Shown here one piece after another: positions 29,401 through 31,122 of a DNA stretch of 64,000 bases. Source of the stretch: Adineta vaga (Eukaryota > Animalia > Rotifera); the NCBI GenBank assembly GCA_021613535.1, contig CP075497.1, positions 6,820,001-6,884,000 on the forward strand, written 5' to 3'. The number at the start of each line of letters is the position of its first letter. Position 1 is the stretch's first letter. A program made the position numbers and the translations under genes. Below the pieces are notes generated by a model. The model searched no databases. It was not told where the DNA came from and saw only the letters and a program-made list of their open reading frames with translations.

Positions 29401-31122
29401 TTCATTCGTTATTTGATTTCATCAAACATTGGCGAGGTAAGTGATTGAATGAAGAGAGGTGAAGATAAAAATCATGGACCTTTGTATGTGCTTTGTGATT
29501 GAATAGGTTGTGTGTATCTTTTTGACTGCTGCGCTTGGATTACCAGAATCGTTGATTCCCGTTCAATTGTTATGGGTAAATTTGGTAACAGATGGTTTAC
29601 CAGCTACAGCACTTGGTTTCAATCCACCTGATTTGGATATCATGGAACGACCACCACGTAATCCAAAAGAATCGTTGATTACACCCTGGTTATTCTTTCG
29701 TTATATGGCTATCGGAAGTAAGCATACTGAATTTTCATAGGTTTTGCTTTCTTTTCAGCATCATGTTGGATATTTGGATGATATCATGTTGAGTTAGAGG
29801 ATCATTTTTATATATTTCTATCTCTCCTGTTAGCGTACGTCGGTTTTTCTGTTGTTTGGAGCGCAACATGGTGGTCGATGGATGCGGCCAATGGGCCTAA
29901 ACTTTCGTATTGGCACTTGGTGTGTACTGGATTTCACTAATTATTTTCTTTTTTTTTTCTAGCATACGTAGGAGCTGGCACAGTGGGTGCCTCCTGTTGG
30001 TAAGGCCTTCCATCCCTTGAGTGTAGCACATGTTTGAAATATATGTTCTTCTTACTCGATTTCAGGTGGTACGTGTCGTATCACGATGGACCACTGTTGT
30101 CATGGACGCAGCTGGTGAGAGTTTGAGAAAAATATTATTGAATGATATTCACATAGATCCTTTTCCTTAAATATGAGTGCTTGTGTGTATATATATATAT
30201 GTATGTTCTTGAAAATGTATAAGAAGTTTTTATTTGTTGTCTTATTTGTCATGGCTAATTATTAGATTTTGGTTGTTAGTGCTTCTTGAATAAGCATGAA
30301 TTTCTTTGGATGAAAGTTTTTTTTGTTAAGATTTAGAAATTATTTCTCTAAGATTATGTTTTATGATTTAGAAACATCATTTTAAATGTCGTGCAGGTGG
30401 CAAAGAATGGGAAGATATTGATTGTGATGTTTTCGATGATCCACATCCAATGACATTGGCATTATCAGTACTTGTCACCATTGAAATGTTAAATGCACTC
30501 AATAGGTATACCATCTATAATCATGTGTCTATAAAATATATGTCGTATTTATTTGTTTGTTTGTTCTAGTTTATCAGAAAATCAATCTCTTTTGAGAATG
30601 CCACCATGGACAAATCCATATCTCTTATATGCTATTGCTTTATCCATGTCATTACATATGATGATCCTTTATTTTCCAATGTTCAATGTAAATTGATTTA
30701 AAAAAAGAATGAATTGTGTTCTATTCTGAAACTATTGTTCATCTTTCTAGACCGTATTTCAAATTTGTCCTTTAACATTGGAAGAATGGTTTGCAGTGCT
30801 AAAAATCTCTTTTCCTGTCATATTACTAGATGAAACTCTGAAATTTATAGCCCGAAGATATATCGATAGTAAGTTCAATTTCATGCATGATGTCACTCTT
30901 TCAGTTTTACCCTTACCTAATTGTGTGCCGTGTTTTTTCCTTCCAGAAACCGAAGAAGGCAGTGCATTGCAAGGCATGTTAAGTTTGTTTGTATTATGGG
31001 GTGTTTATATTGCTATTATCATGTATTCACCTATCTTTCATACATGGGATGGTTTTACTCATCATCCAGTTGGAAATACTACAACATATACATCTACCCA
31101 TCATCGAAATCTCGATTTGTGA
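26486..31122 (+). CDS. SERCA: Sarco/endoplasmic reticulum Ca2+-ATPase, tandem copy 2 (long SERCA2b-like tail isoform)
   Basis: Same catalytic and Ca2+-site motifs as copy 1. Terminal exon 30947-31122 encodes [32 protein letters not shown]...RNLDL*, with an extra hydrophobic helix. Confidence 0.95.
29834..29919 (+). other. SERCA copy 2 mutually exclusive M7 exon, variant A (86 nt)
   Basis: tag|CG TAC GTC...CAC TTG|gtgtgt encodes [29 protein letters not shown], phase 1 to phase 0. Confidence 0.85.
29963..30114 (+). other. SERCA copy 2 mutually exclusive M7 variant B: two exons, 29963-29999 (37 nt) and 30066-30114 (49 nt)
   Basis: tag|CA TAC GTA...TGT TG|gtaagg...ttcag|G TGG TAC...CAG CTG|gtgaga encodes [29 protein letters not shown]. 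Same total length and phases as variant A. Confidence 0.85.

Follow-up and report, generated by a model that had tools for sequence, protein, structure and literature searches.

Can a single gene exchange half of a core membrane helix of its calcium pump by choosing between one exon and a pair of exons? This question is raised by a 64,000-nucleotide (nt) stretch of the genome of the rotifer Adineta vaga (contig CP075497.1, positions 6,820,001 to 6,884,000 of the forward strand), hereafter called the window, whose numbering is used throughout. Motif scans place two tandem genes of the SERCA family of Ca2+ pumps in it, copy 1 at ~17.7-22 kb and copy 2 at ~26.5-31.5 kb. Copy 2 carries the signatures PEGLP (at 27814), DKTGT (27943) and TGDGVND (29224), and the same three motifs are present in copy 1; DKTGT and TGDGVND are the signatures of P-type ATPases, and PEGLP is a Ca2+-site motif. 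An initial annotation, made from the sequence of the window, had proposed that copy 2 holds two homologous cassettes, A and B, which encode alternative versions of transmembrane helix 7 (M7) and are used in a mutually exclusive manner, A being one exon and B two. We consider copy 2 to carry a genuine mutually exclusive pair, derived by tandem exon duplication and providing alternative luminal halves of M7 together with the start of the loop between M7 and M8 (L7/8), with a probability of roughly 0.85.

Two cassettes between constant exons of copy 2

Direct reading of the sequence agreed with the initial annotation on the coordinates, the phases, the cassette lengths (86 nt, and 37 + 49 nt), the 43-nt spacer between the cassettes and the flanking introns of 116 and 257 nt. 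The features of the region are the following, with joints in RNA written as the base before and the base after the junction.

29507-29717, plus strand: constant upstream (RYMAIG) exon, encoding M5-M6 and the start of M7 and ending in phase 1 (translation; RNA contigs)
29718-29833, plus strand: intron 1, 116 nt, GT..AG, removed in isoform A (joint 29717>29834)
29834-29919, plus strand: cassette A, 86 nt, a single exon for the non-canonical luminal half of M7 and the start of L7/8 (sequence, RNA joints)
29920-29962, plus strand: A-B1 spacer, 43 nt, with the donor of A, CACTAAT, a T-run and the acceptor of B1 (sequence)
29963-29999, plus strand: B1, the first half of cassette B, 37 nt, ending with two bases of a W codon (joint 29999>30066)
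30000-30065, plus strand: intron within cassette B, 66 nt, efficiently removed (depth 0 and joint, 4/4 runs)
30066-30114, plus strand: B2, the second half of cassette B, 49 nt (joint 30114>30372)
30115-30371, plus strand: intron 3, 257 nt, partly retained in RNA contigs at depth 3-17 (joint 30114>30372)
30372-30505, plus strand: constant downstream (KHHFKC) exon, encoding the L7/8 loop and M8 (the joints of A and B2 both land at 30372)

The RYMAIG exon leaves one spare base at its end, with a GT donor at 29718; RNA contigs cover it over 29505-29716, spliced to the preceding exon, and relatives carry Pfam domain PF00689. Cassette A is preceded by TTAG and followed by GTGTGT, and its donor GTGTGTAC is invariant in the related loci that hold both cassettes (see below). 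The borders of B1 are CTAG and GTAAGG, and those of B2 are TCAG and GTGAGA. The two parts of cassette B add up to the 86 nt of cassette A, and both cassettes are entered in phase 1 and left in phase 0; because of these equal lengths, the use of both cassettes, or of neither, shifts the reading frame. By our own count, 11 of the 28 residues are common to A and B. The spacer contains a branch-point-like CACTAAT 21 nt downstream of the donor of A and, when it is retained after A, an in-frame TAA at the seventh codon.

Splicing was followed over 29450-31250 in the contig sets (18-56 Mb) of four RNA runs from four studies (X1, X3, X17 and X19). As these are contigs and not raw reads, neither isoform ratios nor the absence of a joint can be derived from them. 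Constitutive introns were joined out, and the intron between B1 and B2 had a depth of 0 in 4/4 runs, so the sets represent RNA and not DNA. Isoforms A and B both exist as spliced RNA. The two joints of isoform A, 29717>29834 and 29919>30372, both GT..AG, were found in X17 (depth 40 and 45) and X19 (41 and 29) and were absent from the contigs of X1 and X3, while the joints 29999>30066 and 30114>30372 of isoform B were found in all four runs. Regarding the proposed exclusive choice between one exon and two, the A joints (2/4 studies) and the chain from B1 through B2 to the next exon (4/4) were thus recovered directly, and we infer the step from the upstream exon to B1 from the way in which the contigs break. 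The contig of spliced B in X1 has a length of exactly 86 nt with 29963 as its first base, and 29992 is the last base of the unspliced contigs; in a graph built with k=31, such breaks imply that the first word of B1 has a second predecessor ending in a base other than G. Base 29717 is A, whereas G stands at 29962, in the spacer, as well as at 29919, where A ends; this second predecessor would therefore fit a junction of the upstream exon with B1 and not a junction of A with B1.

No joint including both cassettes (29919>29963) or skipping both (29717>30372) was reported in the four contig sets, which cannot prove absence, and no joint removing the 43-nt spacer alone was reported in them. A row for 29716>30372, with ends AG..AG and other letters in between, corresponds to the mRNA of copy 1, and a loose end at 29716 in X1 reads TGTTATGTTGG..., which is the cassette of copy 1. 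A contig spanning 29891-29992 (the end of A, the spacer and B1) was present in X17 and X19, in which intron 1 had a depth of 0; RNAs that keep the spacer therefore exist, and they are either intermediates or dead-end products. In X1, positions 29718-29962 (245 nt, comprising intron 1, A and the spacer) form one unspliced contig with a depth of 44, compared with ~70 for the B junctions. With the B1-B2 intron at depth 0, this contig suggests that the A-containing intron is removed slowly or is often retained.

The junction contigs of isoform A could in principle come from another allele or a paralogue that lacks B, or the locus could be an assembly chimera of two paralogues, in which case no single gene would make the choice. 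There are four SERCA genes of this kind in this genome, with probable gene conversion between neighbours, an allelic single-nucleotide polymorphism at 29890 is seen in RNA, and Logan contigs can be chimeric. However, no other near-identical A cassette turned up when the whole genome (100.8 Mb, 6 contigs, with the window on contig 6) was searched, the nearest being 70-78% identical. Moreover, an unspliced RNA contig (29688-29992) runs unbroken from the end of the upstream exon through intron 1, A and the spacer into B1, and the joints lie exactly on GT..AG borders. The same layout was also found in 7 independent contigs of other assemblies, one of them 3.27 Mb long. Misassembly or a paralogue chimera was rejected on the basis of this RNA contig and these 7 contigs, and we attach hardly any probability to a source other than copy 2 itself.

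Conservation and selection in related loci

Metagenome contigs scanned with an alignment of the KHHFKC exon yielded 24 loci, to which protein look-ups added five, and local tblastn with the exon translations led to a classification of these loci into three kinds. The first kind holds A, B1 and B2 (L013, L014, L018, L022, which is identical to L023, L036/L037 and L040, with L012 partial). The second holds B only (L016, L017/L019/L020 and L038/L039), and the third holds A only, with flanks of the copy-1 type (L024 and L027-L034). The dual layout is intact in 7 further distinct contigs, all from Adineta-like rotifers, and it is old. Protein searches, limited by length and exact words, returned Adineta-like fragments alone, and their blank beyond Adineta is uninformative.

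In the seven dual loci compared, all the splice sites and the lengths of 86, 37 and 49 nt are identical, and the spacer measures 41-43 nt. Mean pairwise identity reaches 87% in the spacer, as against 85% in A, 86% in B1 and 90% in B2, and amounts to 59% in intron 1, 73% in the B intron and 49% in intron 3; the spacer is conserved like coding sequence. An ACTAAT-like motif is invariant across the spacers of the dual loci, ~21 nt from the donor of A. The B intron contains a conserved TTGAGTG block. A bridging hairpin in this intron was also considered and was dropped, as RNAalifold predicted no pairs on 12 loci.

Cassette A of copy 2 differs from that of the copy 1 on contig 3 by 14 silent and 3 replacement differences, and from that of the adjoining copy 1 by 17 silent and 7 replacement differences. 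Among the A cassettes of dual loci, silent differences per site (pS) range from 0.17 to 0.60 and replacement differences per site (pN) from 0.03 to 0.14. For B1 and B2, the comparison between the two chromosomes gave 18 silent differences and 1 replacement, with pN <=0.08 throughout. Silent changes are thus many and replacements few in A as well as in B, and neither cassette is unconserved in related species. Both cassettes are under purifying selection, B more strictly, and the contrast between silent and replacement changes implies that both have been maintained. All A cassettes of copy 2 have Asp at position 16, a position occupied by His, Ser, Tyr or Gln in the cassettes of copy 1; this is the one hint that the A cassettes of copy 2 may share a single origin. 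Copy-2 A has the motif WSMDA, and copy 1 has WSMSA.

We also considered whether A could be a tolerated leftover in copy 2, its inclusion being splicing noise or an unproductive means of reducing expression, such that only B makes a working pump. This would agree with the detection of A joints in only 2/4 RNA sets, with the weak GTGTGT donor of A and with its lower constraint relative to B; in addition, the copy 2 of chromosome 3 and several relatives have lost A and kept the gene, and copy 1 already supplies an A-type pump. A neutral relic would nevertheless have decayed, as A did in L015 and L011, whereas in 8 distinct loci A retains an open frame, the exact length of 86 nt and both splice sites, in spite of up to ~0.6 silent differences per site and with pN/pS of ~0.1-0.5. 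The product with A alone is in frame, and where A was seen, its junction contigs and those of B had depths of similar magnitude (30-45 vs 53-90). We therefore hold it to be quite improbable that A is such a leftover.

Distribution of the cassettes among SERCA copies

Copy 1, the upstream neighbor in the window, has a single cassette:

20986-21071, plus strand: the sole M7 cassette of copy 1, A-type, with no B after it (comparison)

This cassette is followed by a 317-nt intron in which no B is found. A-type M7 is no rare oddity in this genome, because it is the only M7 of copy 1, which is well expressed. The two copies are 92-94% identical, introns included, over 17724-20927 and 26541-29716, an identity that extends right up to where the RYMAIG exon ends (20927/29716); beyond it they cannot be aligned across M7, and they are then 86% identical. 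This pattern suggests gene conversion that would halt at the cassette region. A second tandem pair lies on contig 3 (chromosome 3), which brings the genes of this kind to four in the genome; there, copy 1 has A only, and copy 2 has B only (B1 and B2), with a first intron of 284 nt. The exon following the cassettes clusters each copy with its counterpart on the other chromosome, copy 1 as well as copy 2, so the tandem duplication predates the split of the two chromosomal regions.

Relatives show corresponding arrangements. Three long contigs carry tandem pairs, A-only plus dual in Ga0209914_1000972 and in the 3.27-Mb contig of L040, and A-only plus B-only in Ga0209930_1001672; these pairs mirror the two chromosomal regions of the present genome. 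Judged by its M10 exon, L015 belongs to the B-only type, but it still has the final 24 nt of A in front of an intact spacer; A was lost there by deletion. At L038 (2856-3107), and also at L039, the RYMAIG exon is fused to B1 through loss of the intervening intron, with the B1-B2 intron kept. The two cassettes arose by tandem exon duplication, and following the duplications of gene and genome both forms would have been partly parcelled out, A alone to copy 1 and B alone to the copy 2 of chromosome 3, with the copy 2 of contig 6 keeping the switch. A relic of A was sought in the intron of the chromosome-3 copy 2, and relics of B in the introns of copy 1; local alignments ranked against shuffles at best at 6-7/500, and nhmmer profiles gave E values of 0.002-0.06, mostly on low-complexity runs. 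These tests are suggestive only, and we therefore make no claim of a switch older than the tandem duplication.

In the intron after the cassette of copy 1, a block of ~100 nt at 21145-21265 is kept in five copy-1 loci. It resembles a pseudo-exon of 34-37 nt (TTAAG|GTCAAAT...TTG|GTAAGAT) with in-frame stops, perhaps the decayed remnant of a B cassette or else a poison exon, homology tests being only suggestive.

Copy 2 has two alternative C-termini as well, within 30869-31500. The joint 30868>30947, found in 4/4 RNA sets, gives a tail that includes an 11th hydrophobic helix (TM11), and a loose end at 30868 in X17 leads to a short acidic tail exon at ~31456-31500 (ISPRNSELNELEDN*). The TM11 tail exon was found in dual-cassette loci only: it is present in all dual loci that extend to the 3' end, and the B-only loci extending that far all lack it and have the short acidic tail only. 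The loci concerned are L011 (6403-6500), L015, L017, L038, L012, L013, L022 and L040. Since the B-only loci are without both, cassette A and TM11 were lost together, which may have been a single evolutionary event. The choice of M7 might also be coordinated with that between TM11 and the short tail, giving matched pump variants in which the bulky A-type face is paired with the extra helix or with its absence. The joint distribution of cassette A and TM11 among the loci hints at this, but we find it rather doubtful. X1 has the joints of B and of TM11 and no joint of A, a combination that counts against such coupling, and any coupling of the two choices is therefore not strict.

Some neighboring genes were noted too. 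A gene with EF-hands, similar to a myosin regulatory light chain, lies 3' of copy 2 at 32100-32600; as it also follows copy 2 in L038 and L040, synteny is kept. On the 3.27-Mb contig of L040, a Na,K-ATPase beta-subunit-like gene (PF00287; 4092-4794, minus strand) is located just upstream of the SERCA pair.

Exclusion, protein change and comparison with known systems

The exclusive use of A or B could be enforced at two levels. In the reading frame, both or neither of the 86-nt cassettes would cause a frameshift, and a spacer kept in the RNA would bring in the TAA after six codons. In splicing, the spacer of 41-43 nt is probably not spliceable alone, and the putative branch site of B1 lies ~21 nt from the weak GTGTGT donor of A, such that the spliceosome parts assembling on the two would clash.

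Several points weigh against a genuine exclusive pair in copy 2. The joint of the upstream exon with B1 (29717>29963) was listed in 0/4 runs; the T-run at 29934-29960 was skipped there as a repeat, and one joint row of X19 was dropped. Detection of A in some data sets only suggests regulated use, softly, as contigs cannot prove absence. Both isoforms are known here at the RNA level alone, and A is less constrained than B. A tree of the A cassettes, built on 84 nt, was too poorly resolved to show a clade of copy-2 A. Finally, introns of Adineta are reported to be mostly 30-100 bp long, with medians of 55-58 bp (PMC5916493), and the SERCA gene of one relative (L029) has an intron of 50 nt. A spacer of 41-43 nt is therefore short and not demonstrably unspliceable, and the steric part of the exclusion is uncertain.

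At the protein level, the only PDB chains matched by the open frame with cassette A were those of SERCA1 and SERCA2 (SERCA1a residues 842-870, E 0.035). This segment is the luminal half of M7 plus the first residues of L7/8. The pieces of B being only 11 and 16 amino acids long, the comparison of B with this SERCA1a segment was visual. By our own count, B shares 15/28 residues with vertebrate SERCA1a and A shares 13/28. B had been said to match the canonical M7; it is only slightly closer than A in overall identity, and what it does keep is the small A-x-x-x-G face. On the face formed by positions i, i+4 and i+7 (846, 850 and 853 in SERCA1a), B has A-G-C and A has F-W-T/S. In canonical SERCA fragments, the first of these positions is A, C or I, the second is G except in the atypical P0117, and the third, where reached, is small (A/V). 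Position 8 of the cassette is thus G in the canonical fragments and W in A. The replacement of small packing residues by F, V and W that had been described for A is borne out for F and W on this face, the third position being T or S. The start of the L7/8 loop also differs between A and B. At the position of the B1|B2 intron, the canonical fragments P0037, P0042, P0043, P0047 and P0063 have no intron, their frames running through the cassette; the asymmetry of one exon versus an exon pair is unusual.

Judging from these residues, the swap would change the packing of M7 against other helices or lipid, resulting in pumps with different kinetics or partners. The thapsigargin pocket, which had been invoked as a reason for the importance of this region, offers a weak rationale, as the M7 residues that contact the drug, F834 and Y837, presumably lie in the constant upstream exon and outside the cassette.

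The best-known SERCA isoforms are the vertebrate SERCA1a/1b, SERCA2a/2b/2c and SERCA3 variants and the C-terminal variants of Drosophila and C. elegans. SERCA is one of the best-understood membrane pumps; to our knowledge, the natural isoform diversity described for it is nearly confined to the C-terminal tail. The gene described here codes for a pump of this family, and at its C-terminus splicing likewise selects, in a SERCA2b-like manner, either an 11th helix or a short tail. It differs in that the known variation concerns the C-terminal tail and not a core membrane helix, whereas here half of M7 is swapped, the small A-x-x-x-G face giving way to phenylalanine and tryptophan. Among the matches listed by full-text literature searches, some of them judged only by title and abstract, there was no description of a swap of M7 or of another internal transmembrane cassette in SERCA, in line with the initial annotation, and none of mutually exclusive exons in bdelloids. 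A literature check on Drosophila yielded no usable Na,K-ATPase precedent. The two cassettes offer natural, evolution-vetted variants with which to probe the packing of M7 and its bearing on Ca2+ affinity, turnover, lipid sensing and partner binding. For annotators they are a caution, as gene models of bdelloid SERCA will mis-join or drop one cassette.

Both the origin of mutually exclusive exons through tandem exon duplication and the sharing out of isoforms among paralogues are well-known kinds of change. The present genes resemble the subfunctionalisation of splice isoforms, with A only in copy 1, B only in the copy 2 of chromosome 3 and both in the copy 2 of contig 6. They depart from that model in that a gene resembling the unsplit ancestor and both of its resolved descendants coexist in one genome, the intermediate being preserved. 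This makes them a clean case of isoforms parcelled into paralogues while the ancestral switch persists.

Exons 2 and 3 of alpha-tropomyosin represent the steric-exclusion type of mutually exclusive exons. Both systems have adjacent homologous cassettes of equal length and phase, a branch site of the downstream cassette (a putative one at the SERCA locus) close to the upstream donor, and frame incompatibility as a backstop. With its spacer of 41-43 nt and its choice between an exon and an exon pair, the SERCA locus provides a compact test case for exclusivity in an animal with very short introns. It differs from alpha-tropomyosin in the asymmetry of its alternatives, a single exon facing a cassette that is interrupted by an efficiently removed intron of 66 nt, and in that the introns of this animal are very short (median ~55-58 nt, PMC5916493), such that the steric limit may differ.

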